Below the pieces are notes generated by a model. It had not been told where the DNA came from. It saw only the letters and a program-made list of their open reading frames with translations, and searched no databases. The position numbers and the translations under genes were made by a program. A stretch of DNA of 64,000 nucleotides from Lepidodermella squamata (taxonomy: Eukaryota; Animalia; Gastrotricha): NCBI GenBank assembly GCA_047495785.1, contig JBLDXI010000009.1, positions 3,162,001 through 3,226,000 of the forward strand. Direction: 5' to 3'. Below are positions 2,670-62,256 of this stretch, one piece after another. Positions within the stretch are counted from its first letter, which is position 1. Every line of letters starts with the position of its first letter.

Positions 2670-2748
2670 GTGTCGTACCCGGGGATCGAACCCGGGCTGC
2701 CTTTCTGAGAAGGCACGGCTCTAACCTTTGAGCCACCATGGCCGACAC
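2670..2748 (-). ncRNA. tRNA-like / tRNA-derived Pol III element (pseudo-tRNA or SINE head)
   Basis: Minus strand reads GTGTCGGCCATGGTGGCTCAAAGGTTAGAGCCGTGCCTTCTCAGAAAGGCAGCCCGGGTTCGATCCCCGGGTACGACAC-TTTT. It has an A-box, D stem GCTC/GAGC, T arm CCGGG-TTCGATC-CCCGG (B-box) and a T4 terminator. Acceptor stem and anticodon loop are non-canonical. Confidence 0.7.
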
Positions 2749-7256: not shown

Positions 7257-7690
7257 CCAAAAAGTAACTAGTCCTTTCTGAAATAAAATATACCTGTCCG
7301 TGGGAAATTGTTGCCGAAAATCTTACGTCTGCGTTAATCTATTGGAGCATATCGAAAATTGAATCAACAAAAATATGCTGCATTTCGCTGACAGGACATC
7401 GATCTTCCTCAAAAGAAGGGGTAAAGACTGTCATCATCAATCAATTACTAAAATTTGGCTGGGAGCCAATAACAATGCGAGTGTTTCTGCGCGAGTTGTT
7501 TTTTTACCCCTAACCTCAAGTTTGGGTCCTCACATCTCACAAACAACTGAAGTTGATCAATTTTTCTACTAAAAGAGGTCTGGTTTTAAGGACAGCAAGA
7601 AGCTCGTGTGAAATCGCAGGCCGAATCTACATATGTATTATTTCAAAATCTACACAGCCGGTAAGTTGAAACCATAAGTCATATATCCTC

Positions 7691-7706
7691 TGACTCACGT
7701 GACGTA
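7691..7706. promoter_or_regulatory. Overlapping AP-1 / E-box / CRE half-site composite upstream of copy 3
   Basis: TGACTCACGTGACGTA contains TGACTCA, CACGTG and TGACGT, about 225 bp upstream of the ATG at 7930. Confidence 0.3.
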
Positions 7707-7929
7707 AAAGGTCGCTGGTCCCTAATAAATGGAAATTATCACCCTTTTCCTGGTTCAAGTTTCAGCCATTCCGAGCTGCGATAGATGAAATGCAGTTAGT
7801 GATGATTGGAATTCATACTTATCTTTATTAAACGCGCGAAATCCCCCTCCTGATCGAAGTAAGCAACGGGTAGATAGAAAAATGCTTCAAAATTAGAGCT
7901 GCGATATAAGCAAATATCGAAATCTTCTA

Positions 7930-9782
7930 ATGGACCTGCGATTTAATCAAGGCTCGAAAGGATGGTTCGTCGTTGTGGACTATGCAGTTTTACTGGCCGC
8001 GTTACTCGCCAACTGCATGGCCCTGCACAGTGTCGTAAAAACCCATTTCGGCCTGAAAGCTTACCGCCGCTTCTTACTAAGCCTGGTTGCTTCTGATCTG
8101 CTCGTCTGCTTTATCAACCTGCTGAACTTCATCAATCAATCGTTCGGCGATCTACTCAATATCGGAGACGAGGTTCAGCCATGCATAACCAACTTCCTTC
8201 GAAGCCTTTTGATATTCGGGGTCTTCGCTAATCTTTACAACCTGTGCGGTATGAGTATCGATCATTACATCGGAATTGTAAGTGCTTGCTAGTTTAAAGA
8301 CAACTCCATGACATTCAATGGTTATTTCTAGATTTATCCTATCCGATACAGCTATGTAAGCATAATTTCCTTCCTCAGAACATTCTCTACTTAATTCCGG
8401 TTTAGATAACTAATCAAGGCCTGGCAAAGTGCGCTGTTGTCATCACGTGGGTCGCTGCTTTAATCTGCGGCTTTGTTGATATTCCAATCGTTTCGCTGCT
8501 ATACTGGGCAAGCAGCCATCAAGAAAGCTCCCCACCTTGGAGATCTGAGTTTCCAAATAACAGTTGTAATGAAACTTCAGATGAGTTCACGCACGAAATG
8601 GTTCGAAGGGAAGCTGCAGCTTATACCTCGCTGCCCGATCTCGAGCATGTTGACCTACATGAACTGACGAAAATCATTCAGGACAACATTGGATTCCTGA
8701 ACAGGTTTGTCCAAATTGTTCAATTTTACGAAAATGAGTTATTTACTTTTCTATTAGGTCATTACTAAATAAGTCTCCCTGTGATGGGGACGAAGCGTTT
8801 TTTCAACGTGAGACACAATTTATCAATGAACTGAAAGATTTCGAATCGCGACTCGACCATGACATAACAAACAGCTGGTGTTTGTTCTCGAATAGCCAAA
8901 AAATATGGCTGGAACTTTTCGTCGTCTTCTGCACCGTCGTTTGCTTCGTCTTCCTTGTCCTGTGCTACGGCAGAATTTTTCGAGCTGTGAGTAATTGCGT
9001 GATCAATCTTCGCTAATTGCACGCTGTTTTTCCCATAACAGGTCGCTCTCGAAATTCGCGAGAGGAGCATACGCAAATTAGTAATCACCACTCTGCTTTT
9101 ACTCGGTAATTTCGCTGTGTGCTGGCTGCCGCTGATGTGCCTCGAGATAACTATGTGGATCATTGTCGCGCAGGAGCCGAATTACCAGAATGGACCCCAG
9201 CCAGACAGGTATATTAATCGGCTGAATGCTGAAAGCTGAATTAATATTGAAAAATCATATAGCTTGCTTATCGCGCACAACGTTTTCAACACAATGTTTC
9301 TATCCCATCCATTGCTTGACCCGATCGTCTACGTCGCCCGGTTGCCGAATGTTCAGCGCTACGTTCTGCGAAACTACAGCTGGCTATGGTGTAGGAAGCA
9401 TCGAACTCTAGACAACGACCGCCCGCGTTGCGAATCGAAGGCTACGAGCCAAATTACGAACGTGGCGAGAACAGCAGTTACGCGAAATTGCTCTCTTCTA
9501 TCGTATCAACACGAAGCTGAGAACTTTATCGACGGAGAAGTACCGGTGAACTATGGAGTTTCGCTGAAACCGATTAAATCGTACACATCTGCTAAAAGGA
9601 ACCAACTCCGTGCCAACTTCTATCAGGGCTTATCGAATGATAGCACTAGACCGGCATTAACCAGTTTCTCTGGAATCGCTTTTGATCCTTCTCTGATATA
9701 TATGCGGGAAGATAATGTGTACTACAACCATGAACTTGAAGAGGATACGACTGAACGGACACAGAGGATTACTAGTTCGTAA
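7930..9782 (+). CDS. Class A GPCR, array copy 3
   Basis: AYRRFLLSLVASDL, MSIDHY, 24-nt exon 8332..8355, WC..KIWLE, CWLP, HPLLDPIVYVAR. Stop at 9782, AATAAA at 9802 and 9818. Confidence 0.93.
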
Positions 9783-10075
9783 AATATAAATCTATGATCA
9801 AAATAAAACTTTCGGTGAATAAAAATATGTGTTATTTTTTGGCTATTTCTGGTAGACTCTTAGTAGATTAGTCCGTTCTTACCGAAGTGACGTCGCGCAT
9901 GATTATAACGCCTTCATGCTACCGCCCTTTTAAGCTGATTAAATGCGTATCGATTTTAGACACCCTAATCCGGTCTAAGTGGAAAATTCTCGAGCAGGTA
10001 CACAGGCTAGTTTCTAATTCAATTCAGTTTTGATTTTTTCGCCTGACACAACAAAATGGCCAATTTCATTTCGCA

Positions 10076-12073
10076 ATGAATCCAACTGGTCAGCGAACGC
10101 TTTATTTCGAAATCGGAACCTCAGTTCTCGCGGTGCTCGGCAATCTATTTGCCCTTCAAGGCATTGTTGGCGGTAAATTCATTCTTAAAAACTACCGACG
10201 CTTCTTGCTAAGCTTGGTAGCAAGTGATGTCCTAATTTGTATCGTCCGGCTACTCAACGGGTCTTGCCACCTGTTCTACCGGCAAACCGAGGAAAACTAC
10301 ACAGCTTCAGGCAGATACGGAGGTGACTACTCAGACAAATGTTACTCGGCCGTTTTTCGAAGCCTTCTCACATTCGGCCTCCTCTGCAATCTTTTCAACA
10401 TCTTAGGAATGAGCATCGAGCACTTCATCGGAATTGTGAGTTCTAAGAGAATTCCTCCTTAATTTATAATATTCTTTCCTTTACTTTTATTCTCTCAGGT
10501 CTATCCAATGAAGTACAGAATTGTAAGTTTTCCTACATAATTTGCCTTTTCGATTTTTATTCGATATTTTTGAAACGCAGATAATGGCAAAAGGTATCGC
10601 ACGCAAATCGATAGCATTAGTTTGGTGCTCGGCTTTCTGCTTTGGTTTGTTCTATATTTTCCAATCTGGATCAGTTGCTTAATCCTGTCCCTCTATCACA
10701 GCTTTCACTGACGTGTTAATCGCGACAGCGGTTTTCCACGGCAAATCTCAGGTTTCTTCATTTGCACAGAACCCATGCAATGCAAGTGAGCTGAAAACAA
10801 CACCCGGCTTGGCCCCTAGAAGCAAAATATCGCTGGAAAGCCATTTTTCCCGTGGAGGCGGTATTCATTTGAATAAAAAAGCGAGTAACAATTCCCGGAA
10901 AAAGCGGAGGAATTCCACGCGGTCACGTATCGTACACTTGTTACCCAGTACCCCTAATCCGATTTTGCTGTCAAGTTTGAATGACGACGACCTAGTCATG
11001 CTCCATTCTTTCATCAAAAGCGAGCTTCATTACATAAATCGGTCAGTGTTCAATGTCACAATCTATTCCAGTTGATGATATTATTCCAATACAGGTCTAA
11101 CGATGTGTCTTGCGTGGAGAATGAATCGTACTTGCGAGGGATCGACAGCCCTCAGCCGAGCGGTCAATCATTCGATGACGTGTGGCACTTCATTAATTCG
11201 AACAAAATTTGGACCGAGGCGATTCTCGAGATAACCGCCGTCTTGTGTTTCGTTTTCCTAAGCATTTTTTATGGCAAAAGTTTCCGCGAAGTTGACATAA
11301 CCTCTTCAGCATGTGATAATGCTAAGAGGAGTATGAGAAAGCTCGCCCTTACGACCTGGCTTTTACTTGGAGTTTTTGCAATTTGCTGGTTACCGTTAAT
11401 GCTGTTCGAAGTGTCTATGCTCGCCATTGCAATCTCGACTAAGCGAATGTTTTTATCCTCCTCAATGTATGAATTGATTAGGCTAATTATTCAATGTCTT
11501 AATCTATATCTATCCCACACAGATCGTTCCTGGTCTATGATCTCCTAAACCTCCTCTTCCTCTGCAGTCCCCTACTCGACCCTGTAATTTACGTAATTAG
11601 GATTAATCAAGTTCAGAAGTCTCTAAGGAAGAAATATGGGCGCATCTTGCAATGTCTGGGGCTGTCCTCGAAGGAAGAACTAGGCGTTAGCGTACTGGCT
11701 CGGCAAGTAATGCAAATCACCATCGTAAAAGCTGTTTCCGTGGAACCCACCGCCCCAAATCAGAGTCCAATTCGACAATCAATGTCAGGAACTGCAAGTC
11801 TGTCCAATTCAGGTAAGAATCCCTTCATTAGCTGATGAATTTAATAGCCAATATATTGCCTTCTATTCAGCATATTCTGATAACATCTCACGGAGAGGAA
11901 CTCGCTTCAACCACAATAGGAAATTGCGCAGAAGTTTGGGAAGTGCTCTGGAGGAGGAGTCTCGTTACAACCGAAGCAATAGCGCAGCAGATGAAATGTT
12001 CAACGAGACGCAGCTGACCCCGCTATCTGCCGCAGCTAGTAGATCTTTTGTCAGCTCATTATCACATACGTGA
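10076..12073 (+). CDS. Class A GPCR, array copy 4
   Basis: NYRRFLLSLVASDV, MSIEHF, KIWTE, CWLP, spliced TM7 SPLLDPVIYVIR. Last exon from 11871 reads open to TGA 12071-12073. Confidence 0.9.
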
Positions 12074-12683
12074 TGATTTGACTTTACTATAACTGCTTCT
12101 TTGAATGAATAAAATATCATGGCTTCTCGCCAGAAGGTATTTCCTAAGAGCCTCTTTGATCCCTTTCTAACGTAAACAACGAGACTACACCGTCTTTTGC
12201 CAAGTCTTTATAGTCCGGATTTTATTCTGGAAGCAGCATTTTCAAGCTTCGTTTTCCCATCGGAGCGTTATTGGAATCAAATATCAGCTCAAAAACCTAG
12301 ACCTTGGAGTCGATAGTACAAATACACAGAGACGATTATACAGGAACAAATAAGGCGATTTCTCCCGCGCTTTGATAATTTTTTTTCCATATGCTGAGGC
12401 TCTATGCATCAAACGCACCCATTCGAATGATCAACGCCGTATCATTGATTATCATCATCCCAAGTGCTCATCATAAAATCACCGCGCGTTTGTTGTTGAT
12501 AGTATGGCATTACACAGTAAGTGGGTTGAAATCGTTTTTAATTCAATCAACAATTAGATGTTGTTTTAGGCCTCGCCAGTAGTTGTAGAATACGACTATT
12601 CACTTGTAATTGATTATTATTTTTTCGCTCCAGACCTCCTTCGAACTGATTATTTCGGACAACAATGGGAATTTGAAGGAGAA

Positions 12684-14448
12684 ATGAGCGCGCTGCTGAA
12701 CAGCCCAGAGGGTTGGTTTCTGATCGTTGATTCTGCTATTCTGCTATTCTCGCTGGTCGCTAACCTACTAGCCCTTCATGGCGTTTGGATGACCACGTTC
12801 CGCCTGATGGGTTACAAACGCTTCCTAATCAGCCTCGTTGTCGGAGATCTGTTCCTAATTTGCGTCCATTTATTCGATAAGGCCAATCAAATTCTCGTCG
12901 CCGAATCGATAGGAAAATGCTGCCGGTGTGCCACTTACTTCATTCGAAGCCTTATTGTGGTCGGAGTGTTCGTCAATCTATTCAACTTGTGTGGTATGAG
13001 TGTGGACCATTACATTGGAATTGTCTACCCATTGCGATATCGATACGTAAGCTAATTTTCCCATCCCAACTTCATCCTAACTAACTTAATATTCTTAACA
13101 GATGATGAGAAAGAAACTAGCTCGATGGGTGTTGCTTGTCATTTGGATTGGAGCGTTCTTCTGTGGTTTCATTGACACTCCGTTCCTGATGATGGGTTAC
13201 TACCAAGAATCAGCAGCGCTAGAATCTAGAATGGCGCATTCCTTCCTAGCCGATTCCATGCCAGAAAAGTTGGCGCTGAAAACTTCAAATCTGACCTACC
13301 TCAGTCGCTATTTTCCTAATGATCCTTACTTCTACAACCTGGAGCATAAGCTTAAGATAAAAGGGAGTATCAACAGTACCCGCCAGCTTAGGATCGCAGT
13401 CGAAACTCATGAATTTGGTCCGATGCCAGAGTCACAATCTCTTAGAAGCCCCGCAACAGATACGTAAGTTTGAGAAGCATTTTGGTCCATTCCTATTAAT
13501 CCAATCCTCTTATTTTAGGACATCCCCGAAGCTCCAGGTGAAAGTTCAAAACAAGCGACAGTTTATAAATGAAATAAGGAACAAATCCTGGGGTCTGTAT
13601 GTCGAGCAACGGGACAATTGGTGCTTGTATCTGAGCCCTCGAAAAAAGTGGCTCGAGATGATAAGTGGCCTTTGTGTCCTAATCTCCTTCGTATTTATCA
13701 CCGCTTTTTACGGGAAAACCTTTTCTGAGGTAATTTGGATGCTACCTATATTGAATAAGCCCCTACCTCTGATATTACAGGCCTCGATCGCTCTGAACAG
13801 GAGAAGCATCAAGAAGCTGACTATAACCACATGCTTACTGCTAGGCGTTTTTGCAATTTGCCTACTGCCTTTTGTGATATTTGAACTGGTGACAAGTACA
13901 ACTTTTTTCGGTGATTTTTCTCGCGATTACAGCGAATGGTAAGGAAACAGATTTTTAAACCGGACTTCTCTACTTTATTCCCATCCTAGGCTGCTCATAA
14001 TTCATAAAGTTTTCTACTCAATTTTTCTGTTGAACCGTATTCTCGATCCGATAGTTTATGTTGCAAGACTGCCGAATGTTCAAAGGTCAGTCCCACTGGA
14101 ATTTTCCTAATTGCCTTATGATTTGTGATTATTCTTAGAACTCTAATCAGAAAATATGCATCGTGCTTTCCGTGCCTCGGCAATTTGAAGCTCGCAATCG
14201 ATGAGCGCAATTCAGATGCTCGGAATGCGAGTGCCTTGGGTGGCAGCATCCACGATCGCCTGAGCAAGCGAGGTAGCACGATGACGGCGAAAGACCTCGC
14301 GCTGCCGATGCTCGAAGAAGCTATGCTGAGGTCTGCGATCGTCGTTATGACATCGAGTAACAATATGACATCTTTAGAGTTGCAACCTTGTATAAATCGC
14401 GAATCAGAGGGGCGTTCCCCGCTCTCATCCGCGGTCGAGAGTGAATAA
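12684..14448 (+). CDS. Class A GPCR, array copy 5
   Basis: SPEGWF, GYKRFLISLVVGDL, MSVDHY, KKWLE, CLLP (W6.48 replaced), NRILDPIVYVAR. C-tail in ORF 14125..14448. Confidence 0.92.
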
Positions 14449-14817
14449 CAAATAAATTAGCCACTGGAAACGTGTTTGACGCGAACTTTTATCCCGGGAA
14501 AAAAATCAATGGTTAGCCTTTAGGGGAAAAATGGATGCTGAATGCCGACACTACTGAGTTTTCCCTTGAGCTCGTGATTATTGTGTCATTCCGACCCATC
14601 GCTGCAATTGAGTCCCTGGCGTTGCATACTTACTCATCGATAAATCTCAGATGGCTACCCTCATCCTATTCTCGTTATTTAGAGCAGATACATCCGCTGA
14701 AAAACTTAATTTCAATATCCGCATCACAATATCCTTACATGAGGTGTTATCTTAAAAACTTGTTTCTGACTAGAATATTCTAAATAGCAGATATTATACG
14801 ATGTCAGGTTTACTAAG

Positions 14818-16838
14818 ATGCTGACAACGAGTGAAACAAATGGGTTCACAGTGTTCAATTACTGCATCATCGCCCTGGCCATTGTCGGTAACTGTTTTGC
14901 GCTTCAAGGAACAATGGGCGGCAAGTTCAGCCTGGTCGGCTATCGACGTTTCCTGATCTCCCTTATTGCTTCAGACTTTTTCATTTGTGCTATTCGTGTT
15001 TTCATGTACATCAGTGCGAATCTGGCTGAGAAGAACCACTTTCATGAAGTTCACTACCAGTGCAGTTTGGCCATTTCGAGAAGCTTCCTAACCCTGGGAT
15101 TATTCACTAATTTACTCAATCTTTGCGCTATGAGCATTGACCACTTCATAGGCATTGTCTACCCCATGAGATATCGATATGTAAGTCAAATCCTATTGAA
15201 TATTTGAAGCCTAATAGAACTGTTGAGCTCTTAGATAATGGAGAAGGGAATCGCTAGACGATCAGTCGCCATTGTATGGTCCTTATCGGTACTAGTTGGT
15301 AAGACATTCCCTTGTGAGACTTGTCCCTTTTACGTTAGTGTTACCATGACAGCTTTCACTGACGTTTTTGTCTCATTCGGAGTTTATTATGGCAGACAAA
15401 GCTCTGCAAAGTCTGATCAGAATCTAAATACACCGACCCAAATAAGTACAACGCCGTCAAATATGGACTGCTCACATTGGCTGTTGGTTACGGCTCACTC
15501 CAAAATTTCGGCTCCAGCAACAACTCCGCGGACTAAACTCCCTAAATCACAGCGGAAACCGACAACTAAAAGAACTAAGACATCGCGAAGGAAGCCGGTC
15601 GACTCGAGAACAACTACTCAGAAAATTACTTCTACGACAACTGGTTTTGTCTTTGAAAACTTTGAGAGTATAGTTGAGAGTTTTGACTCGTCGGATTGGT
15701 TGGACCTAGATAAATTCTTTGGCGATGAATTTTCAAGGTAAGTCGATCACTGAGCCGGATACATTGGTTGTAATATTTTCTACAGCATTAAGACATGCCC
15801 GGAGTATCAGAACATTACGATGGATGAATCATCAATGGATTCGGTTGGTGTGATAACCAGGTTTGATTCCGTGACTCATGACCCTCGCGCTGAGAAGAAA
15901 AGCGTTTGCCACTTTATGAACGCTAACAAAATGTGGACGGAGGCCGTTATCGTCGTATGGGCTTTACTCTCCTTCGTAATTCTCACAATAACCTACGGCA
16001 AGTCTTACGCAAGTCTCTGCCCTAAAAACTTGGATAAAACCAGACGGAGTATCAAAAAGCTAGTTGTTACAACATGGTTACTATTAGCTGTTTACGCGAT
16101 CACGTGGCTTCCAGTTATGATTTTCGAACTGACGATGTTCTTCGTTGCTCTTTTCGTGAAGAAGAACGCGCTGCTAGCGCCGTCGACATACTACTTCCTT
16201 CACGACGTCCTCAACTCCATTTTCCTATGCAATCCTTTCCTTGATATCGTTATTTATGTCGCGAGAGTCAGTCCTGTTCAAAAGTGAGGAATCGTTGAAA
16301 TTTCCATGGCCCTCCTTATATTATTGCTTGATTTAGAGCTTTAATTGCGAAATACGCACATATGATGCCATGCTGTATTTCCAAGGAAAAGCGGAATCCT
16401 ACTGTTCGTCATTTTATTTACCGATTGGCCAGACCAATAAACTGCTCCCAGCCCAATGTGCTCAGCGGGGTCAAAGAGCTCAAAAGACTCGGGTCTTTCA
16501 TGGATCCAAACGGTAAGGCTCTCTCAAACTGTCAAGATATGCTTTATTTCATTTTCATCACAGATTTTATGAAAGAAGAAGCTCGCTTGCTGAATTGGAG
16601 AACTTTAAAGATTCGACCCAGTTTGGAGATTGCTCTTCGCGAGGAAGCAGCGTTTGCTCGTAAAAGTGGTCGAGACAGCCTACCGCTGAGTTCAGCTCGA
16701 TCCTACGACGGATCCGGAACTGTAAAAACCCCGGTTTTAGACGATCTACAAGAAGAGGCGAGTATCAACAGTCGGTCTGCCAGTATCGCCACTTTCAGAC
16801 AATTCGCTGAAGACCACGATAAAATATATAACGTTTGA
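14818..16838 (+). CDS. Class A GPCR, array copy 6
   Basis: GYRRFLISLIASDF, MSIDHF, Thr/Lys-rich ECL2, VCHF..KMWTE, TWLP, NPFLDIVIYVAR. C-tail in ORF 16362..16838. Confidence 0.92.
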
Positions 16839-17362
16839 AGGAAAAATAAAGTGAACAAATGGGAGTAACACAAATAATCATATCGGACATAATCATAACA
16901 TGGTTGAAAGCGAACGCTGATTACTCAGGATTGGCAGGAAAAAAATCCTCCAGCTGTGGCTTTGAACTGGTACAATTCATAGGGCAAGACGTGCTTGTTT
17001 ATGGATATATTTGTTCAAACCATAAATAGACTTCTCTTTTGCGGGTCATTTCCGGTGTTCGTTTAGCATAAGGGCTGTTTCATATATCGAGAAGTGCAAG
17101 ACCTTATAAGCTGAAATTCTTTTGTCCCACAAACGTTTATTTGCATCCGAGACATATTATATCGTATTACGCAAATCTGTCGTGTTTGGGATAATCCGTT
17201 TTACATGCTCAATTCATAATTAGCAGCAATGACGTGCATTCCTGAAGTGTTATCAAAGCTGAATGTTAATAACCAACATCCCACGACATTAGGTGAAGTT
17301 TTGTCCATGCTAAGGATACTGTGTGAATGCTACAAACCTTGGTCACTGTTTACTGTCACCTA

Positions 17363-17452
17363 CATTGTGTGACCACTTGCGCGTTCTAATTTTTTTCTCC
17401 AATGCTTTTGTATGGAGAAGTCATGCACATAGCAAAAAGTGGTCACACAATG
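17363..17452. mobile_element. 90-bp Tc1/mariner-type mini-MITE
   Basis: Perfect 16-bp TIR CATTGTGTGACCACTT / AAGTGGTCACACAATG flanked by TA on both sides. Confidence 0.7.
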
Positions 17453-18086
17453 TAAGGATTACGTGTGGTCTGCTCGATCGATTGTCCTGCCTCGAGATTC
17501 TATTGATAATACCTGATGGTAAATTTTGACAACATTTGCAACAATATGTTTGCTTTCGATATATTAAAATGTTCTCCTAAAGGGTGGATAGTTCAGGGTC
17601 TCATCTAATTTCCTTCATCCCCCTCCTCTCTTGAACATTCTCCAATATAGGGCAATATAGGTAATGGCGTAGCGTGTTTTTAATGCGTTTTCGTCCGATA
17701 TTTCATTATTAAGATAGCAAGATTTAGAGGTGAACACGGCTTTTGCAAGGAGAACTTCCTAGAGCCTTTATTCGTCGTCCAATTTTTACTCAAATAATTT
17801 AGCAGTTGTGTTTCCGGTAGAAAAAAACAGCCTGTAATCATTCCTAACTAGCACATCCTCGCAATTGATATTTTGTTTGACGATCAAAATTTAATTTATA
17901 AATCTATAATTTTGATTTATACCGCGTGATCAACTGTCCGGAAAATTGCACTGCCTGACAGGCTTATAGGAAACATCCATGACTCATCATCTGTAATCAT
18001 GAATGGATTCCTTGTCTTTTCAAATTACTTGATTCAGTTCATTTTGAGCTTAGGAATTATTATATTCGAGTCGAAGATGGTTTATC

Positions 18087-20313
18087 ATGGATGAAGATAC
18101 AGTTAACCCTTTCGCTTTACTTGCCGAGGTGAAAGGTGGATTTGTCATTGTCGATCTCATCATTCTGTTTGTAGCCCTCATCGGCAATATCTTGGCTTTA
18201 TGTGGCATCCTCCACTGCAAATTCGCCCTGGCAGGATACCGTCGCTTTCTAACTTCACTGGTGGTCTCCGACATCTTCCTATGTTGCGTTCAAATCGCAT
18301 TTCTCGTCGATCAATACATATCAGTGCTACCTATTGACTCGGTGACATCAGATCGGCAGGAATTTGCCATGATTCAACAATGCATGGCAACTAGTCTAAG
18401 AAGCCTTTCGATGGTCGGCGTATTCGCAATTCTTCTCAACCTATGCGGCATGAGCATTGATCATTTCATTGGCATGGTAATTTGTTTGCTTTTACACTTT
18501 GAACAAAATTAAGCCTTCTTATTTAACAGACATATCCTATAAAGTATCACTCCGTAAGTGGACAATTTTAATTAAATTCATTTTTAAAAAATAATTAATT
18601 ATAGTGGATGAATTCGAGCATGGCGAAATGGTCAATTGCTCTGATATGGGTCGCTGCGTTCTTTCTAGGTCTGATTTAGCACTTATTGCATATCAGTCGA
18701 TAAATGTCCCTTTTTAGGATTTGGGGACATACCAGTGGCCGCGGTGACCTACTTCGCAAATGAAGGTGCTGCAAAATCGCCGCAACTTACAAAAACTGGT
18801 CAAACATCTGCTGAGTCCGTCTTGAGGACTTCGACCGTAGGGAAGGGAATACAGTTCACTTTTGGCGTTGTTGATCAGCACGCCGTCTCAATGGCCCCGA
18901 CTGTCAGGAATGAACTGCTGGCCACAATGGCGTCAAATTTTTATTTATACTCAGCACAAGGCAGCAACGCTTATGATACTTTTGATGAAGACCTCGTGAC
19001 AACCACGCCTAATAAGCCTAATGACAAGGCCGTTCTCGCGCACTTATACAACGCAGTCCGTGACGCAAAATCATCTCAGGATATCCTGGAGGCATTTCAG
19101 AAAAGCCATCAACAACTACGAGAGCTTTCTGGCAAGGCGCAGAGCGCTAATGTTCGATCGGCAGTTGAAGCCTTCCTGAGCATCGCCGGGCCTGAGGGTT
19201 TGGCCCCGATAGAAGTAGACCCAAGTGACAAATCAATTGAGGACGTGGATCCTACGCCACATGGAGGATCAAGCCCAGCTGTAGGGCTGTGTTCCCACCT
19301 CAACTCTCAAAAAATCTACATTGAACTATTCGCTGTTGTTTTCACGCTGATTTCTTTCGTTTTCCTCACATTTTGCTACGGTGCTATGTTCAAAAATGTT
19401 AAAAGGAGCCTTGGATTCTCGCGGAAGAGGCACAGTCTTCGAAAATTAGCTTTAACTACGATATTTCTTTTGGCGGCTTTCGCTATTTGCTGGCTACCGA
19501 TGGTGTTGTCGGAAATCATCGGTTTTCTTGCCGTTTCATTAAATCTCAACATTTCAATATCATCAACCACGTAAGTTTTCCTAAATGTAATTTACGCTGT
19601 TTAACGAAGTTATCGGATATCCTTTTTCTAGTTTCTTGCGTTTGCAATGGAGTTTCAACTCGTTATTCTTACTTCATCCATTGATCGATTGCTGTGTTTA
19701 CGTCACTCGAGTGCCGTCGCTACGGCTTTACGTAATGCGAGTACTTTGCTGCTGCACGCCACGAATCGAGCAAACAGCGACGAAAGTCCTAGTCTCAAAT
19801 ACCATTAAGTTCCTTACCACTCCTACTACAAAGATTTTGCATACGATGAGCTCAACGGCGACCAACAACACGTCCCTTAAACTGGACTCGCCCAAATCAA
19901 TAAGAGATCTAGAAAAAATACCCAGCATTATCACTGAGCTTGGAAATAATGACGGCGAGGAAGTTTTTAAGGAGGTTCTATCACCGACTGGGAGTGGCCT
20001 GTCACGTCGACCCAGCGTCCGAGACTTGGAGATACGTGAAAGTGTCGATATACTAGAGGATCTGAAGCTAATATCGGCCGGCCAAGCCCCTACACCCCGG
20101 CCAGTTAGGAAGAAGAAAGTTGTCGAAAATTTCAGCTACGTCGGCTCCGATGACTTTCATTTCGAGCCCAGCAGTCATTATTCCGCTGAAGATGCCGAAA
20201 CGTTGAACCGGATGCTGCGGGCGGCAAAACGAGCGTCCCGCAAGAAACTCGCCGCTCGATTGAAGAAAAAAGACCTGATCAAAGTGCCTGAAATTGATAT
20301 TAATTTCGTCTAG
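18087..20313 (+). CDS. Class A GPCR, array copy 7 (ECL2 ~195 aa)
   Basis: GYRRFLTSLVVSDI, MSIDHF, 24-nt exon 18530..18553. ORF 18735..19574 holds ECL2-TM6 (CWLP). HPLIDCCVYVTR and a long C-tail. Confidence 0.93.
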
Positions 20314-23288
20314 ACTTACAAGTAAAGTTGAAGAGCATTGGCTGATTGGATTTCAAAATTTTCATATCTTTTTCATTTCCGTATGAAATCAATTGAGACT
20401 GGCACTAAGAAAAGGTATAATAAATTTCATGTTTAAGCAGCATTTGGCGCGCGGTCACAAGGGCAAAAAACCGCTTTTCTTATTGAAAAATTCGGTACGT
20501 TTCTATGAGTTCTAAAATGCCAAATTTGCTAGTAGTTGATTGACTGAACTTTTTGCTTACCCATTCACTGCTCCGGAAGAGCTTACAGTAATCGCCTTCG
20601 ATCAATGGGAACTCAGTTAACTAATATCCGCACAGCTAGGACGAACATTTGCCGATATTTTTTGCCGATTAAATATCCTAATAGTGGCAGGTTTACGGAA
20701 TATACGGAACAATCTGTGAATAAATTTTGACATATTTGCATCCACATTTTTGGCTTTCAGATATTAGTCTTTCCCGCCACGAATAAATCGCGCATGTAGT
20801 TGTGCATGTGCGTTATTACTACGAAAGACAGCTGACTAAACAGCTCTTACCATTATCGCTATTCCGTAGTGGCGGTAGTCGAGACCTCGTAGCTACATAC
20901 TCTTGGCTCTTGTAACTATTCCCTAATGACAAAATGACGCTGGTGTATGTTGTTTGTAAGACTTGACAACGCACTAATATGAACAAGAGTGTCGCTCTTG
21001 TTAAGAAATACCATCCAGGGTATGATTATACATACTTTGGCTCGTAGACAATGCCTATTTTAATGATTTCGCCCCAGTTTTACAGATATATCAATTCCTA
21101 GTCTTATTGATTTCTAACCCATCACGTTTACAGCATCCTTAAATTGCATGAATCGCTCAAAATTTAATCCACGCTTCAGCCTTGTTAGAAATGACACTTA
21201 ATCATGATACAAGACATAGGTTAACAGTCACTTTCTTCTTTGAGAAATCAATTAGAAGAGATGAGACATCTGAAGTTAAGCGAAGCCAAGAATGAAAGGC
21301 TATTGCGTGCTGTGTCTCGCGTTCAGCTTGACCATCAGTCGCCGTAGCATAGAAATTAGTCAAAATACGCGCTCAAATTAGCGAGCAAGCGGTGGAATTT
21401 TAATTACAAAACTAGCCACCTAGTTTTTCGCGGGTTATAACACGGCACCCACTTCTATCACACAGCCAGTTGCTATTGCTCATTAGTGAATGCATGCCGT
21501 ATTTAGCTTCATAACAGCTCAAACACAGCTTCCCAAGTAGAATTATGCGTTGCTTTCAATATTTTAGTCACTGCAGCAGCATTAGGAATTGAAGACTTTC
21601 AGAGATTCACTGCCCTATTGAGCTTCTCCTGACTCTGGAATCATTTTTTCCCTTGAGTAACAATAACTTTTTCAAGCACTGAGGAGAAAGCTTTAACGTA
21701 ATCTACTGTGTTGTAGAAATTAGGCGTAAAACGCGTTTTCCTATTACAACAACGCAGTATTTTGCTTGCTCTTCAGAAATGCTAACCGCGCAATAAACCT
21801 ATCCAATGCGGCTGAAAATTGCATAATAATGTTGCGCGAGTAATCGAAAACATTCATAGCAAAAAACAACAGTTATAGGATGGGAACGCGTTAATGTTAC
21901 TTGGCTTTATATTCTTAATACATCCCCACCGTGAAAGAACCTTACTGAGAACAAGAAAAAGATTGTGCAGGTATATCGCACAGCGTGCATCGGGGCACGC
22001 GGCACGCGACACGAATGCAATGTGTTCCCCATCTATTTTTAGGTGCGTTTCATTTCGCGGACACACCGTATACTGCACACTATAGGAAGAAACTGAACTA
22101 TACCTAGATATAAGAAATCTCGTGACTAACCTGAGCCAGAAGATCGATATTTATCATCAATTGCGTGCGAAAGAATTTCGAAGCTATTTTACTGGCTTCG
22201 AAGGTTGTTTCTATGCTACAGCTCAATCTTCTGGCTGTCACCCAGTTGGTAAATAGATTGCATTAGCATAGAACCAGGGGTATCAGACAGATTCCGCATC
22301 TCACTTAATCTGTCTATAATTTGGCGTCGACTCGAGGTAGGAAAACACCTTTTTGATCGATCACATTTTTGTCGCTGCCGTTGTTGCTTATGCACTGGGA
22401 TGATTTCGCTTCATCTTCTTACATCCTTTCTTACTTTAATGCGTTCCACTAATACTTACCCAACCGAAAACATGTCTTGCAGTTGCAAATCGCTAATGCT
22501 GTGCGCGGAATTTATTTTTTCGAGCCCGACCTTTTTGCACACGATATACCCGCGGGATTGCTGAATTTCTTATCAGCGAATTTTCTAAAACTCGCATGTA
22601 AATAATAATATCGAACATCGCGCGCGCTCTTCTCAAAAAAAAATCAACCATATGCGGCGCTTATACGTGCGGTTAAATAATGAAAAGTTCAATAAGAAGT
22701 GTACACGTGTTTTTTCTTACACATAAATACGGATTAGTTCTCATACACTAGGCGACGTACTAGTAGAAATAGAAATCGTGAGATCGATCGGATACGAAAT
22801 AGCGATTCACTTGAGAGTTGAGCAGCTAGATTTCATTAGCTGAGAAGTTGTTTCCATGGGGTAATGGATCATGAAATTACTCGTTATTTCTTCGACTTCT
22901 ATGTCTGCGTCACTAGTTTTCCCACTCAAACGTCGTGCACACCGTATGATTTGTAAGTAATGCTACTTTAATATTTTCATCTCATTTAATTGCTCCGACG
23001 ATTTAATTACTTCTCACAGGTAAACCAGAGTAAAATGAAAGGCTAGACTAATAATTTTAATTAACGGATGGGGGCAAAAGCAAAGCTCCACAAGCCTCCG
23101 CACCTTACCTAAATATTATTGATCTGGAACTTGAACTAATTGAAAAAGTGTCGCACGATTTTCAGTTAGCGTCCTTAAACCAAGACATAACTGTTCAATT
23201 TTCCTAATGGCTTACTTGTAGATGAAGCATCTTAAGATAGATTAGTACGCCATCTTAAAATGTCGCTCGATTTTCGGAGTCTCTGATC

Positions 23289-25148
23289 ATGGGATACCAC
23301 TCTTTTCAAGACGGCGTTCTCGGCTTCTTCGTCATTTTTGATCTGGTCGTACAAATTCTGGCCATTCTCGGCAACTGCCTAGTCCTACTCGCCGTGGTGA
23401 ATGTTAAAATAGGCCTGGCTGGTTACCGACGTTTCCTCGTAAGTCTGCTGGCCAATAACATTTTTCTAAGCGTCGCCCAAGTGTTAATCGCCATCTACCT
23501 CGAATGCGACGAAAACATCGATAGGAAGCATTCATGCATCGGAACCTTCCTCGACAGCCTCAAACTCTTCGCTGTTTTCGCAGCCCTTTTCAATCTATGC
23601 GGAATGTCAGCAGACCATCTTATAGGCATCATTCAGCCACTTAAATACGACTACGTAAGTTTGACAATATACGACCTGAGTAGATCTATAGTTTTTGTCA
23701 ATAGCTGATGAACACAAAAATGGCTAAGGCTGCTCCTTTCATCATCTGGGTTTTCGCCTTTATATTTGGTAATTTTTCAGGATTTTACCGAATTTTTTCC
23801 GAATTGTTGTTATTAGGCTTTGCTGATATACCGATAGCTGCCTTGGTGTACTACATGTACAGCTACCGCCCTGTGACCACAGGCGCGTCGTATTTGGCCC
23901 TGTTCGAGGCTTTGATGAACTCTTCATCGTCAGCAGCAGCTCTCGTCGCTAAAAATCCGCAACCGTTCTTCGAGCCTCAGACTACCTTGGCCCCATACCC
24001 AACGATTATCCACTTCAAAAACCCCGATTTGTTCGAAACCACCCCAATGGCTACGCCATCATTCGATATGGACGATGCGTTTCTCGGAGACCCGTTTTCT
24101 GAGCTGAATACCCTGAAAGATATCGACGTCGATCTGTTACAGGAAGAGACAGATTGGTGCTTGATCTCGTTTTCTTACAAGCTCTACTGGGTTCAATGGT
24201 TTCGTCTAATTTGCACTGTGGTTGTTTTCGTGTTTCTACTATTATGCTATGGTAGAATTTTCGGGAAAATCCGGAAAAATCATTCGCTGTTGAAAGGCTC
24301 CCGCTCTGTCGATACGCGGCAAAGGGTGAAACGGCAGCGGCGGTCGTCCAGCAATACATCCCAAAGCAAGAGTGCAACGAGTACGCTAGCCGCTAACGCA
24401 GCTCTACTCGCGACTTCGAGCAACGCGAGCCAAATCAACTATGCCCTAGTAACCCGCAGACAATCGACTTCGATGCACAGACGAAGCTCGAGAAAATTCA
24501 TCATGACAACGCTGCTCCTGCTGAATGTTTTCGCTGTCTGCTGGTTGCCTTTCATCTTTTTCGAAATTTCCGTAAATCCCGAACTGGTGATGGCGTCGGC
24601 GCCAGAGGGGGATGAATCCAGTATAACTAGGTAAGGATTGTTTGATATTTCATAGCGAAACGTCTACCTGAATTTTCAAAGGCTTCATTTTCTACAACAT
24701 CTGTTCAATTCGCTGTTTTTGTCGTATCCGTTACTCGACTCGATAATTTGCGTCGCGAGGGTCTGCTCCGTACGAAGGTGAGACTAATTTCGCTTGATTG
24801 ATTTCCTGGGTGATTACTCGTAAATACAATAGGTACATCCATCTCATGCTGCTTGTTCCGCTCAAATGCCGCTCGGCTGGCTTCAAAAACAGCATCGGCC
24901 GCGAATCGACCTCGTTCACCCCGGTAAATCACAACATCATCAATGCGAATATCGAAGTCCTCAACTCACCCGGTAATCTCAACAACAATCGATCGACTGG
25001 CAGCGTCGGCTCCAGCGGCAGCCTCAGCCTTCAGAAATCAACCGGCCTCGCCCTGGCCAGGCCGTTGATCGCCGAAAATAATGCCAGAAAGGCCAGTGAT
25101 AGCGGCTTCATATACGCGGCGCCAAACCAGTCCCCAAGTAATGTGTGA
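23289..25148 (+). CDS. Class A GPCR, array copy 8 (long ICL3)
   Basis: GYRRFLVSLLANN, MSADHL, WC..KLYW, long basic/Ser-rich ICL3, CWLP, YPLLDSIICVAR. Ends PSNV*. Confidence 0.92.
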
Positions 25149-25415
25149 TCTCTCAATCTACTTTGAATAGTTGAAAATAATCACTTCTCTGTGTACAACT
25201 AACAATTACACGCCAGTGAATTCTTTTTATTTTTATCTGCTATATTTTCTCACTATTTTCCGACTTGAGGTCGCATTTTTCAAGCAATGCGACAGTCTTT
25301 CTCCCGTTCGATTAACACCATGAAAAAAACAGCTATCAAATGAGAAATCAAAAGACATGATTCAATAAAACATAAACGTTCTATGAGTCACTGATGTTTT
25401 CAATCGATCGATCTT

Positions 25416-26218
25416 TCAGTTGAACAATCGCCGGGCCGGACTGATCGATGAATGCGCCAACTGATAAAAAATAAAGCTAGGGATTATCTACAACTGATCG
25501 TAACTAAACCCACCTGTTGAACGCGACTTCGGAGGAAACGATTTTCCAGCTCAATCAAAGTTAAATCTTCAACGTTTCTGCCAGATGACTCGGATATTAT
25601 CTTATCCTTATCCGCTTCAATCACTTTCGTCAGCCGATCGTTCTCGGCCGCTAATGCACTGACAACTTTCTCGAAAGAACTTTTCGTTTCTTCTTCTCGA
25701 TCTTCAAGTTGGTGGGCTTTATCGATAGCCACTTGGAGTTGGGTTAGTAAGTCGCTTCTTTCAGACCGCATCTTCAACAAAGCAGCCATGTTTTTCTCAC
25801 TCAAATGATCAGGACCATTGTCGGATTTCTTCTTCAAGTCGGATAATTCAGCTTTCAGCTGCTGAATTTCCAAGCCTCGGAATTTCAGCTCGTCGGACAA
25901 CTTTCGCTGCAGACGACTGGCGGCTGATTTGGTCTTCTCAAGTTCCCAATCTTTCACAGCTAACTGGCTCTGAATAGCGTAGTAAGCGTCAGAAACTTGC
26001 GAGATGTACGTCAGCGTTTCCCGGGACATGACGGAATGCCTAATGGCGTCGATATCGGCTTTCAAGCCAAGGTTCTGTTTCAGCAGTGATGACATGTTAA
26101 GGCGGCTGTGGAGTAGCTGTCGTTTCAGGCGGTACGTGCGTTTTTTCAGAAAATTCAGCGTGAAGGTACTATTTTTAATACCAGAGGAAGCACGGCGGGG
26201 AATGTCAGGTTGCATCAT
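25416..26218 (-). CDS. Coiled-coil protein of unknown function (2 exons visible)
   Basis: Long open frame rich in heptad L/E/K/Q (ELEKTKSAASRLQRKLSDELK..LKAELSDLKK..). GT-AG intron 25461..25513 leads to LAHSSISPARRLFN*. Likely ATG at 26218 follows a pyrimidine-rich AG. An upstream exon is possible. Confidence 0.7.
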
Positions 26219-26489
26219 TAGCTCACTAGAAGACAGGAAAAACTCGGTCTCAGAATTTGCTAATTGATATAGTGGGATAGACAGTTCATTGTTGAGTAAG
26301 CGGGAGTGCACTGAGGGGTGCACTTTCCCGCACTTTTTTGGATCAAAATCCGGCCGACATTGGGAGACATCATTTAACAGAATGACTCCTTGCGAACATT
26401 GTTCGGGGCGCTATCGTTAGTGCCGTTGATAACCCGGGGATTTACGCTTTTATACGTGAAATTGGAGTTGAAAGAAAATGCGAAGGTTG

Positions 26490-27150
26490 AAATGTGAAAA
26501 GTTGGGGGTTTGACAGTATTTTCGTCAGATTTTGATGCCGCTCTCAAGATCAATGAGCCAGCAGTCCAACCATACCAGAACCAGTTTTTACCCAGTGAAA
26601 AAAGCTGTTGAAAAACCGATTTTTTATGATTTCGTATCAAGTCGTATCAAGTCAAGAAGACGAACGATATCTAAAATAGGTTGATGGTGGTCACGGTTGC
26701 TGAGAAAATGGGCTTCTAAGTTTCGGGTAAAAATTGCCAATTTCGAAAAATTCGCGCTTAAAAATTTAGCTTTTTATTGCATCAATTAATTCCGATCATT
26801 TATTTTCTTATGCACATTTGACGCTTTCTCAGGGTAATCTGAGGTGAGGAATATTGCTAGATATTCAAAAATATTCAAATATTCGAAGATATTCAAGCTA
26901 GTGATCACGCGTCAACCTAATCGATAAGACTTTTCGGCGATACGTTTCCCGACTTTTGAGGTAGATAGGAACCTTCTTCTGAATTTCAACAATTCAAAAT
27001 CCTCAAAGAAAACTGAGTAAATAAGGACATCTAAGAATCCAAGAATCTTCCGTCTTCAAATCAACACACGTTTTGCCATTTGCTGGAAAACACGGAAATT
27101 ACGCCAAATCTCACTTATCAATTTTCAACGGTCATTTTACATGCGCAATC
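26490..27150. repeat. Dispersed repeat family B, copy 1
   Basis: Colinear blocks shared with 34260-34830: gatgccgct.tcaaga, ggttgctgagaaaat.ggcttc, gggtaatctgagg.gaggaat, cgtcaacctaa, ttttcggcgatac, acgttttgccatt.gctggaaaa.acggaaa. Confidence 0.8.
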
Positions 27151-29843
27151 GTAATTTTTGGCCAATCTCAGATGAGGAGTCTCGCTGGAAATTCGAAAAT
27201 TCACGTAATTTACGGAAAAAGTCTTGTTTCTCCCATTCAACCTGAATCGATAAGGCCTTTCGTCGACACTTTTTGGTTTCACGAGAGATGGGAGCCTCCC
27301 AGAGGTCTGAGGAATTCGTAACTTCAACACCCTCAAAACCGCTGACCTACTGACTAAAAACATGGGAATATCCGATTTGCGGAGAAGAAACGACACTCGT
27401 TTCCCTTGTCACTGCGTTTTGCCTTCCATTCACATGAAGAACGCCACTTTTTTATTTGCCAGCCATAACCTTGAAATGTTGGGAATCCATATGACTATTT
27501 CGATTTCGGGTGTCTTGACAAATTCCGAATTCTAAATCCAGTTAGTTGAGGAAAGGTTTTGTCAAGTTAATTCCAAATCCCTGTCGTTATTAGGTGCACC
27601 GGCAACCCCTGAGATGTCTGCGCAACGACAAGGCCGACTTTTTTAAACTGAATTTCAGCGTTTGAGAAGGACACGTCCGGTTATTGTTTTTCAAAGTGGC
27701 CCTCTTTACTTTTCATTAATTCTACGAAATTAAATTGTAACAGAATGCAGAGGAATTTTAGTGATTTGATTAGAATCTAAATTGGCCATCGTTCTCGGTG
27801 GGGGGTGTGGCAGCAAATAAAATTTAAAACGCCGAACTGAATTACTCATGTGAAATTAGCATGCTGTCATGGCGCGACTACTACTGGACGAAATGTCCAC
27901 CTAGAATTAAGAGAATAATTGGAGCGAGGCATTTTTTTTTACTTTCAAATGTCCCGATTTGAAGGTGGTGTAACTTCATTTTGAAGGCATTAAATGACCA
28001 TAGTTCCAAAACAGTGCGAGACAGCAGTCTGCCAGAGTGATATTCCTCGACAGGGCGATCAAAAACTAATCAAACTTAAATTGAGGATCTTTTTAAACAA
28101 CGCTCCCATGCGGCTGAGCAGCAAATTTCGAATGTCGACTAATAACAGGGCAAGGCTGTCGGCTTTTTCGCCGTGTTGCGTTAGAACTCTTAAACTTGTG
28201 GCGCCTTTACGCATTCACCTTTCAAATGATGTCGCTTATTATAATGAATTATATTGCCTGGACCTGCTTCGTAAACATGACAGAAAGGGTGAAGTTGATA
28301 CGTCCCAAACTCGGGTTTTCCGACTAGATTTCAGCTTATTGAAAGACATGTCGGGTTTTTCCTTCGAAAGCATGATCCTCTTTATTTTCCATGACGCAAA
28401 CTTTCCAAAAAAATATGGAATTTTAAATAATGCGGGGGAATTATCATCGATATGATTAGAATCTAATAAACTGCCCGCAGTCCGTGATTGAAGCATGGTA
28501 TTACGGCAGTTTACTTCGAGCGAGCAGAGGACGAGGTAAACTATAAAAATTCGAATTACATATTATGTGGGGAATTGAATTATCCACTTTAGAAACCATG
28601 CTGCCAGGGCTCGAATAATCCTGGAGGACACTTCATCTACTCTAAAATTAAGATAATTATCCGAACCAGACTTTTTTCAACTGTCCGAGGTTAAAGGCAA
28701 TCACACTTTCTTTTGAACGCATTTTCTACTGGAAAATTGTCCGGTGCAACACGTTTAATCTTAATCAAAATGTAAGAGTAATTTGATGTTTTTTCTTGCT
28801 TATTTGGAGCAAATAAGTTGTAGGGCTTCTTTCTTTCGCATTTTTCAACATTTCGTTTGAGGACTAATTCAATGTGAAGATCCTGCCCGGGTGGTATAAC
28901 GCCTCCTTAATAATTAGCCATCTTAAATAGCAGTATCACACTCTGCGACGGATTTATCGACCTTGTCCATATATTTTTTTTCTACATTCTTTTGAGTATC
29001 ACATTATGGAGCCTTGCATCAAACAATTTGTATATATGCAGCCATATCGCTGGGCTGCTCGCCAAATTTCTGCGGTCAAATATTGACCCTTCGCTTTTTG
29101 GTCTAGAGACTCAATCAACAATGCACATTAAATGATGATCAACTCCATGAATAATGCTACGCCGCGTTCGAATTCCAAGACAAATCAACGGCGTTAGATA
29201 GTGTTAGATCAATTGCAATGACAGCGGTTGGTTTGCACCTAATTTGATAGAGTAGCTTTTACAGCTCGAGATCGCGCGTTAACCGAAGCGTTATTACAAT
29301 AATGCGAAATAAACGATTCGCCCGCGTGTAATTATTTTCGCAGACAGCAAAAAAACTGCGCATATATCTTTCCGCGCTCATGTCAAATATTATGCGCTCG
29401 CCTACCGCGCGCGAGTCAATCATCTCGCCGTAAAAGAGATGAAGAAAAACTTGGCGGAGAATCATCTATCATCTCTCATCCCGGCGCCGCGCGCTATCTT
29501 ATTCTAGCTTACTACAACATCTATTTATTATTGATGTCATTACACCAGAAGTCCACGTCGTAAACAAAAGCGCGCCCACAATTATTGTTGAAGCTGTCCT
29601 CGCTGAAAATGTCCGGTCGCCTTTTGTGCGATAATAGGTATGACGTATCTTGGGTGCGAAGTGGTCATCCATCACAGGCCATACACAAAAATCGATGTAA
29701 TTTACGCGCCCATCTAAGCCTCGCTAATCCAATCGATCAATAAGGCTGAAATTGAGCGTAATAAATACCCAGTTTTTTCTAGTGATATTATTATATAAAT
29801 GCGGCCGTCGATTTCGAAATTTTTCATTATTTTACGCCGATAA

Positions 29844-62180: not shown

Positions 62181-62256
62181 TTCTGATATTAACTCATATT
62201 ATAGCATACAAATATTACATGCTTGCGTTAGGATCATAGGTTTAAGCGGAAATCCG

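Follow-up and report, generated by a model that had tools for sequence, protein, structure and literature searches.

A stretch of 64,000 nucleotides from the gastrotrich Lepidodermella squamata (assembly GCA_047495785.1, contig JBLDXI010000009.1, positions 3,162,001 to 3,226,000, forward strand; hereafter the window) carries a tandem array of sixteen divergent genes for G-protein-coupled receptors (GPCRs) of class A, in which the first transmembrane helix (TM1) is preceded by almost no N-terminus and a very long second extracellular loop (ECL2) connects TM4 to TM5. The best explanation as a whole, to which we assign a probability of about 0.6, is that a paralogue-specific ECL2 module stands in for the N-terminus in these receptors. 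The family trait is an N-terminus of ~10–20 residues together with an insertion of ~50–180 residues on the TM4 side of the ECL2 cysteine. Each paralogue would have its own loop, with a TM4-proximal part that is richer in serine, threonine and proline and may be flexible and glycosylated, and with blocks of predicted helix that are specific to the paralogue and retained between species. Such a module would capture or gate ligands above the seven-helix pocket, as the loop of the C3a receptor (C3aR) does, in the place of the N-terminus; this would give an array of receptors with different specificities. A role in ligand recognition like that of the C3aR loop is plausible, as is the proposal that the loop serves as the ectodomain, the latter at roughly even odds against a tolerated spacer.

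Sixteen receptor genes and the long loop of copy 7

The 16-gene receptor array of the original prediction stands up to a tblastn search with copy-7 exon pieces as query, which finds 16 plus-strand copies of the exon encoding TM1–3, spaced 2–7 kb apart across the 64 kb. These exons start at positions 30, 5430, 7957, 10127, 12690, 14821, 18087 and 23316 (copies 1–8) and at 29868, 36858, 40715, 45460, 48733, 53406, 58832 and 62284 (copies 9–16). In all 16 the methionine lies 8–18 residues ahead of TM1, in agreement with the near-absent N-terminus that had been predicted, and most copies have an in-frame stop no more than 13 codons upstream of it. The window is ~41% GC, and its introns are of the GT..AG type and ~50 nt long. 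Identity among the paralogues over TM1–3 is 35–48%, a divergence by which the genes of the array are old.

12..63700 (end of copy 16 approximate), plus strand: 16 divergent class A GPCR paralogues in tandem (tblastn; Met/TM1 listing; motif scan for TM5, TM6 and TM7)

The interval 18735–19320 is an open frame within exon 4 of copy 7, between the end of TM4, FGDIPVAAVTYF, and CSHLNSQKIYIE, and encodes most of a TM4–TM5 loop of ~185 residues. The five exons of this gene join to a protein of 670 residues (ICL, intracellular loop):

18087..18476, plus strand: exon 1, with the Met, a 16–18-residue N-terminus and TM1–TM3 (translation)
18477..18529, plus strand: intron 1, 53 nt, GT..AG (run X1 joint 18475>18529)
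18530..18553, plus strand: micro-exon 2, 24 nt, TYPIKYHS, part of ICL2 (flanking X1 joints; translation)
18554..18604, plus strand: intron 2, 51 nt (X1 joint 18553>18605)
18605..18668, plus strand: exon 3, the first part of TM4 with W4.50 (translation; X1 joints)
18669..18717, plus strand: intron 3, 49 nt (X1 joint 18665>18715, cut +3; splice scoring)
18718..19570, plus strand: exon 4, with the end of TM4, the entire ECL2, TM5, ICL3 and TM6 (open frame; Pfam 7tm_1; X1 contig)
19571..19631, plus strand: intron 4, 61 nt, GTAAGT..TAG, predicted (gene model, splice scores)
19632..20313, plus strand: exon 5, with TM7 (HPLIDCCVY), helix 8, a cytoplasmic tail of ~200 residues and the stop (translation; X1 contigs 19681–20293)

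In exon 1 the codon of N1.50 begins at 18186 and that of D2.50 at 18270, Cys3.25 is at 18381–18383, and DHF takes the place of DRY from 18459 (18459–18467). The ICL2 stretch encoded by the micro-exon is fused to exon 1 in copies 5, 6 and 8, so that intron positions vary between paralogues.

Contigs of run X1 were compared with the window over 14800–20400. The RNA nature of this run is only guessed in its record; it behaves as RNA, in that exons are covered, the 1.1 kb of intergenic sequence at 16857–17978 is uncovered, and GT..AG joints are present. A 724-nt contig is colinear with 18843–19566 and has no joint within exon 4. The copy-7 loop is thus not spliced out; it is transcribed, in frame, and kept after splicing. 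The first X1 contig begins at 18085, 2 bases ahead of the copy-7 methionine, and with no X1 cover over 16857–17978 no upstream exon is seen for this gene. The contig data therefore speak, for copy 7, against both of the ways in which the layout might have been illusory, a loop absent from cDNA and an N-terminus supplied by an upstream coding exon. Around the predicted intron 4 the contigs stop at 19566 and restart by 19681, with a dip in depth and no joint listed. Of 13 positions at which the window and the runs differ by a single base, 11 are synonymous, including both of those inside the copy-7 loop (19055 and 19142, relative to run X1).

First-pass gene finding gave good models for copies 3, 5–11, 14 and 15, missed the copy-7 micro-exon, and failed at the whole-gene level for copies 1, 2, 4, 12, 13 and 16. 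Because of these patchy models, loops were measured along splice-aware paths between two fixed anchors, starting where the TM4 anchor ends and stopping at the conserved cysteine, with TM5 ~8 residues further on. The lengths to the cysteine are 65, 69, 106, 131, 121, 156, 178 and 101 residues for copies 1–8, and 125, 116, 179, 121, 125, 146, ~76 and 54 residues for copies 9–16. The predicted range of ~65 to ~195 amino acids is matched by these values (54–179) once the ~8 residues to TM5 are added. The loop is open without splicing only in copies 7, 8 and 9, and the other 13 have a predicted intron in it (one each, two in copy 13).

18756..19289, plus strand: variable part of the copy 7 ECL2, 178 residues, from the end of TM4 to the conserved Cys (anchor-based model)
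19290..19292, plus strand: conserved ECL2 Cys of copy 7 (45.50 equivalent), with KIYIE of TM5 8 residues further on (invariant column in the 86-sequence alignment A2)
15391..15906, plus strand: copy 6 ECL2, ~156 residues, the most mucin-like loop, with a predicted intron at 15738–15785 (anchor-based model; composition)
41409..41998, plus strand: copy 11 ECL2, ~179 residues, matching copy 7 in length, with a predicted intron at 41476–41528
62917..63127, plus strand: copy 16 ECL2, ~54 residues, the shortest of the array

We consider it very improbable that the long loops are artefacts of annotation, inflated by unrecognised in-frame introns, or that the genes are decaying pseudogenes. Introns of this kind do occur. 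At its TM4 exon boundary, copy 6 contains a 54-nt intron that is in frame and free of stops (15299–15352), confirmed by a joint in X1, and one of 48 nt is predicted at the same boundary of copy 8 (23769–23816), where the orthologue (contig L001, 7823–8713) reads straight through without the insert; a reading based on open reading frames (ORFs) can consequently overestimate lengths, and adds false residues here. Several database relatives are also ORF run-throughs, copy 4 lacks the loop cysteine and copy 12 is very divergent. Nevertheless, once the predicted introns are removed the loops still measure 54–179 residues, copy 8 aligns colinearly with its orthologue and the gaps are too short for introns, and the loops of copy 9 and of its orthologue (protein P0005) are both 125 residues long. 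For copy 7, where contigs cross the loop with no joint and almost every difference from the runs is synonymous, the artefact is largely refuted.

The loops vary in composition. Serine, threonine and proline together make up 12–35% of residues across the 16 copies, hydrophobic residues 26–44%, and N-glycosylation sequons number 0–5 per loop. TTP-type runs occur in the loops of copies 6–9, 14 and 15, and copy 6 has both TTP and TTT runs. The mucin-like character that had been predicted applies to copy 6 (35% S+T+P) and copy 15 (33%), where the content is clearly high, and is overstated for most of the copies. Tandem Repeats Finder detects no tandem repeats in the loop coding sequence, and a repeat-based make-up of the loops is thereby rejected.

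Receptor class and placement of the loop

The copy-7 exons were searched separately, and the joined 670-residue protein served for a hydropathy and charge script. Exon 4 matches Pfam PF00001 (7tm_1) with 30.6 bits against a gathering cut-off of 30.5 (E=3e-7), a marginal score because the query held only TM5–6. P0005 has a precomputed PF00001 match, and its AlphaFold2 (AF2) model, with the 125-residue loop, has a predicted template modelling score (pTM) of 0.73 and a predicted local distance difference test score (pLDDT) of >90 in the core. This model superposes on NTSR1, MC3R, CB1 and A3AR with Z values of 25–26 and a root-mean-square deviation (rmsd) of 2.6–3.3 Å over 250–270 residues. With P0005 as its folded member, the copy 7 family is assigned by modelling to the class A (rhodopsin-like) seven-helix fold.

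The motifs agree with this in part. In the TM1–3 alignment of 11 copies (A1), N1.50 is nearly invariant, the LxxxD of TM2 is present, and the cysteine at the top of TM3 is invariant; position 2.50 is Asp in 9 of the 11 rows and Asn in copies 8 and 9. In A2, which combines the family with ordinary class A receptors, W179 (W4.50) is invariant and D68 (D2.50) nearly so, and the only invariant columns are Cys3.25, W4.50 and the loop cysteine. Seven copies, including 3, 4, 5, 7, 8 and 9, have C[WL]LP in TM6. The E/DRY motif with Arg3.50 is not found, the arginine being absent throughout the array, and A1 shows the pattern MS(I/V)DH(F/Y) instead. Most copies have DHF, DHY or DHL, copies 1 and 2 have DQF, copies 4 and 9 EHF or EHY, and the copy-7 orthologue DNL; position 3.49 stays D/E, and 3.51 stays hydrophobic or aromatic. 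DHY also occurs in the ordinary receptors closest to the family, from Owenia and from metagenomes, which points to a wider class A clade without Arg3.50. NPxxY is likewise replaced, in most copies by a DPxxY variant (PLLDPIVY), and Pro7.50 is absent in copy 7 (HPLIDCCVY, window 19675–19700) and in its orthologue (HPFIDTVLY, L001 ~6500–6560).

Several properties place the long loop. Cys3.25 and the loop cysteine are both present in 15 of the 16 copies, the exception being copy 4, which keeps Cys3.25 and has a His at the loop position (window 11186). Because the loop cysteine aligns invariantly with the ECL2 cysteine of class A receptors, it is predicted to be the usual disulfide partner of Cys3.25. 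In copy 7, lysine plus arginine number 3, 2 and 8 in ICL1–3 and 1 each in the N-terminus, ECL1 and ECL3, and ECL2 is net acidic (14 K+R vs 21 D+E). None of the 16 loops contains a TM-like hydrophobic stretch, the highest 19-residue hydropathy being 1.30. The conserved cysteine pair, the charge bias and the lack of an extra hydrophobic segment together put the loop outside the cell, a position that these sequence features support well; an intracellular loop is not borne out by any of them.

Divergence of the loops and what they may do

The short N-terminus and long loop are not confined to the window. A TM1–3 profile scored against 1.84 billion representative proteins gave 171 matches at E≤1e-3 and 53 at E≤1e-10. 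The best matches looked up are gene calls on ENA metagenome contigs, followed from ~E 3e-11 downwards by ordinary class A receptors; no named relative of the family is among the family-range matches looked up, and the nearest named relatives come from the annelid Owenia fusiformis, whose proteins here (two in A2) are class A receptors of the ordinary type. A word search with copy-7 exon 4 (284 aa) found no match in the 156–497 aa range, and one with P0005 found only P0005 itself. Metagenome relatives that span TM4–TM5 have the same layout as the array. The distance from W4.50 to the ECL2 cysteine has a median of 129 residues (48–179) in the 19 family rows of A2, whereas it is 28 (24–33 in 64 of 67) in the 67 nearest ordinary receptors, and the corresponding medians for the stretch ahead of N1.50 are 29 and 67 residues, respectively. 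By this contrast the short N-terminus and long ECL2 form a derived family trait, in which, to judge from the aligned sequences, the loop would have grown by roughly 100 residues and the N-terminus shrunk by ~40.

As predicted, the loops are mostly unalignable between paralogues: in an all-against-all blastp only copies 1 and 2 match (4e-5), and shuffle Z values for the other paralogue pairs range from −1.5 to 1.4. Comparison between species gives a different picture. Orthologue-like genes lie on metagenome contigs L001 (copies 7–8), L004 (copy 5) and L008 (copy 3), the pairs being best tblastn matches, with synteny only for copies 7–8 and L001. Orthologue pairs are 46–73% identical over TM1–3 and 52–73% over TM5(–6), and synonymous sites are saturated at the 46–73% amino acid identity of the core. 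The loops match their orthologues by blastp at 7.7e-15 for copy 8, 1.8e-6 for copy 7, 1e-4 for copy 3 and, marginally, 0.016 for copy 5, and shuffle Z values for orthologue-like loop pairs are 19.5, 9.3, 7.7, 5.6, 5.0, 3.2 and 2.6, with 1.7 for copy 14 and P0007. Part of each loop is conserved in its own orthologue. Beyond helix 8, the copy-3 and copy-7 pairs show no similarity in their cytoplasmic tails. In copy 7 the conserved part of the loop forms a block, in which AF2 places three helices at 102–114, 119–136 and 142–156 with pLDDT ~50.

19023..19193, plus strand: block of the copy 7 ECL2 kept with the orthologue (DKAVLAHLYNAV...AFLSIAGP; blastp 1.8e-6, shuffle Z 9.3, alignment with L001:5666–6412)

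These patterns bear on two words in the original prediction. The loop was called swappable, and this we cannot sustain: it is not a separate exon, sharing one with TM5–TM6 in copies 7–9 and being cut by introns at varying places elsewhere, it is not shared between paralogues, and its coding sequence contains no repeats; it has instead diverged in place. Cassette exchange or gene conversion of loops was considered and rejected, no loop being common to non-adjacent paralogues. The loops were also called hypervariable, which is apt insofar as they are unalignable and fast-evolving; however, the paralogues are old, the tails are at least as unalignable, and within clusters of ≥90% identity the loops are free of indels and, by a rough tally, differ at ~1.3% of residues, a variation too small and too little independent for a test. 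On the sequences compared, the loops are fast-evolving and paralogue-specific, with partly constrained islands, and are neither hypermutable nor exchanged as cassettes.

A simple alternative is that the long ECL2 is a tolerated spacer, mostly unconstrained and disordered, perhaps glycosylated and drifting freely, while specificity resides in the seven-helix pocket and the residues near the cysteine act as a lid. We regard this as somewhat doubtful, albeit with a good deal in its favour: AF2 confidence in the loops is low, orthologue loops are only 16–36% identical with many indels, no known domain matches them, and every long non-membrane segment, the C-terminal tails included, is unalignable between paralogues. 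Variation within the clusters, at ~1.3% in loops and ~0.3–0.5% elsewhere by rough estimate, also looks like relaxed constraint and not like targeted diversification. A spacer does not readily explain why the loops keep orthologue-specific blocks (Z up to 19.5) whereas the tails keep none, and a hydrophobic content of 26–44% with predicted helices is atypical of a pure spacer. Furthermore, a long loop is present in every family member seen (16 copies and 19 A2 family rows). If the loops do prove to be tolerated spacers, the array would be a curiosity of annotation, and ORF-based surveys and loop-length filters can miss such genes.

The segment next to the cysteine suggests a further alternative. 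The last 20–25 residues before it are acid-rich in most members; over the last 20, acidic residues make up 20% vs 14% in the remainder and S/T/P 18% vs 25%. A Trp lies just ahead of the cysteine in 15 of 34 loops, and the P0005 model has helices predicted at 284–300 and 303–318, just before Cys324. Part of ECL2, such as this acidic helical segment, could enter or cover the orthosteric pocket as a tethered agonist or autoinhibitory plug, in which case the receptors would have constitutive activity or be switched by a factor that displaces the loop. ECL2 is established as a built-in agonist in some orphan class A receptors (PMC9839698, PMC12444479). The idea is nevertheless unlikely, since the pre-Cys feature is a soft compositional trend and not a conserved motif, a plug needs ~15–25 residues and leaves 100–180 unexplained, and no model puts the loop into the pocket with confidence.

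Against these alternatives we prefer the ECL2 module that stands in for the N-terminus, and we note the observations that count against it. RNA evidence, drawn from the assembled contigs of a run guessed to be RNA, is limited to copies 6 and 7, and the loop lengths of the 13 intron-bearing copies depend on the models, that of copy 15 being uncertain. Loops have no Pfam or PDB sequence match above noise (CBM46 0.027, YtzH 0.14, Lmo0181 0.003). Orthologue ECL2s are 16–36% identical with 25–35% gap columns and length differences of 19–53 residues, which suggests that much of each loop is weakly constrained. Residues 226–281 of P0005, inside ECL2, have pLDDT <50, and AF2 applied to copy-7 exon 4 alone with a single orthologue gives pLDDT 42 and no usable loop fold. 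Finally, with His, Gln or Asn at 3.50 and without Pro7.50 in copy 7 and its orthologue, coupling may be atypical.

A more specific form of the module explanation can be put forward tentatively. A spiralian clade of small animals may, independently of C3aR, have moved ectodomain function into ECL2 throughout a class A GPCR family, such that a module before Cys45.50, one to each paralogue, sets recognition, possibly of proteins or glycans and not of small molecules; these modules of 50–180 residues would be partly folded and kept between species, on a core without Arg3.50.

Other features of the array and its surroundings were noted. Copy 12 (45445–46931) is far more divergent over TM1–3 (25–30% identity), lacks N1.50, and may be a pseudogene. 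An ORF of 279 residues on the minus strand, coiled-coil-like (25484–26323), breaks the array between copies 8 and 9, and copies 9 and 10 have apparent introns of 1.3–1.8 kb after exon 1. Long unalignable cytoplasmic stretches lie at 19771–20310, 24260–24500, 42878–43598 and 60117–61070, the C-terminal tails are 100–240 residues long, and ICL3 of copy 8 has ~90 residues and is rich in Ser and Arg. Upstream of copy 7, a 94-bp element at 17361–17454 with 18-bp terminal inverted repeats (CACCTACATTGTGTGACC / GGTCACACAATGTAAGGT region) looks like a miniature inverted-repeat transposable element (MITE). In DNA run X2 it is ~3–5x as deep as the flanking sequence, and at each end contigs diverge; one of the diverging contigs (loose ends, run X2) carries CCCTAA (telomere-type) repeats. 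In the related species, two tandem single-pass genes with Cys-rich and fibronectin type III (FN3)-like parts, which are not GPCRs, precede the copy-5 orthologue (L004 4147–9273), and the copy-3 orthologue adjoins a major facilitator superfamily (MFS) transporter and a further paralogue with an ECL2 of ~100 residues (L008 1704–3370). Gene order in the array is thus not kept in that species.

Comparison with known receptors

The obvious parallel is C3aR, which has a short N-terminus, a flexible glycosylated ECL2 of ~172 residues and a TM3–ECL2 disulfide (PMC10518620). Acidic residues and sulfotyrosine in that loop are needed for C3a binding, and the loop, which extends over ~159–330, has the disulfide cysteine C172 at its start (PMC10518620). 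The array family shares with C3aR a class A core, a short N-terminus and a giant ECL2, the loops of copies 7 and 11 being as long or slightly longer. The two differ in that the insertion lies between the cysteine and TM5 in C3aR, and here between TM4 and the cysteine, which is ~8 residues before TM5; moreover, C3aR is a single gene and the array a whole family. Foldseek gives no specific kinship, with C3aR (8zwg) at rank 45 among tied class A matches, nor is there any specific kinship in sequence. By the opposite placement of the cysteine, the long ECL2 of this family has an origin independent of that of C3aR.

Among the class A GPCRs considered in one study, the longest ECL2s are those of C3aR (~172 residues) and the motilin receptor (65 residues), in the latter of which a helical element supports a largely invisible loop (PMC10017046). 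Measured to the cysteine, 14 of the 16 copies exceed the 65 residues of the motilin receptor, copy 1 equals them and copy 16 is shorter; measured from TM4 to TM5, all copies except 16 exceed them. The motilin receptor is the top Foldseek match of the P0005 model, although scores are tied with many class A receptors and thus indicate no specific kinship. GPR52 and GPR21 offer a likeness of another sort, in that ECL2 carries a function usual for a ligand or N-terminus (PMC9839698, PMC12444479); their ECL2 is of ordinary length, however, and entry of the loop into the pocket is not indicated in the array family.

Structure comparisons also point to the melanocortin receptors, which are the nearest ESM Atlas structure clusters for family member P0023 (TM score 0.78), and MC3R is high in the VIA-align ranking of the P0005 model (Z 25.1). 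Melanocortin receptors have a short N-terminus and a DPxxY-type TM7 motif in common with the array family. Their ECL2 is very short, the opposite of what is seen here, and they are not known to have the TM3–ECL2 disulfide, again the opposite of the array family.

In genomic organisation there is a parallel in the Lophotrochozoa, where lineage-specific tandem expansions of class A genes with fast-evolving, heterogeneous extracellular loops have been described as candidate chemoreceptors (PMC11886862). In that survey ECL2 has 25–30 residues, there is no TM3–ECL2 disulfide, and no one-to-one orthologues were found between species (PMC11886862). The genes in the window are likewise tandem and taxon-restricted, with 16 on one strand; in contrast, their ECL2s have 54–179 residues, the cysteine pair is conserved, and orthologue-like genes are present in a related species, one pair of them syntenic (copies 7–8 with L001).

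If the loops set specificity, the array would be a natural series of 16 cores with 16 different outer modules, on which the replacement of an N-terminal domain by a loop could be tested directly, and the lineage-specific receptor expansions known from spiralians would gain a further layout. As judged from sequence comparison, the family is of a known kind, a lineage-specific class A expansion, and what is new is a vestigial N-terminus combined, family-wide, with an ECL2 of 54–179 residues inserted before the cysteine. C3aR and the motilin receptor are isolated cases of a long ECL2, whereas here there are 16 genes and their relatives in another species.

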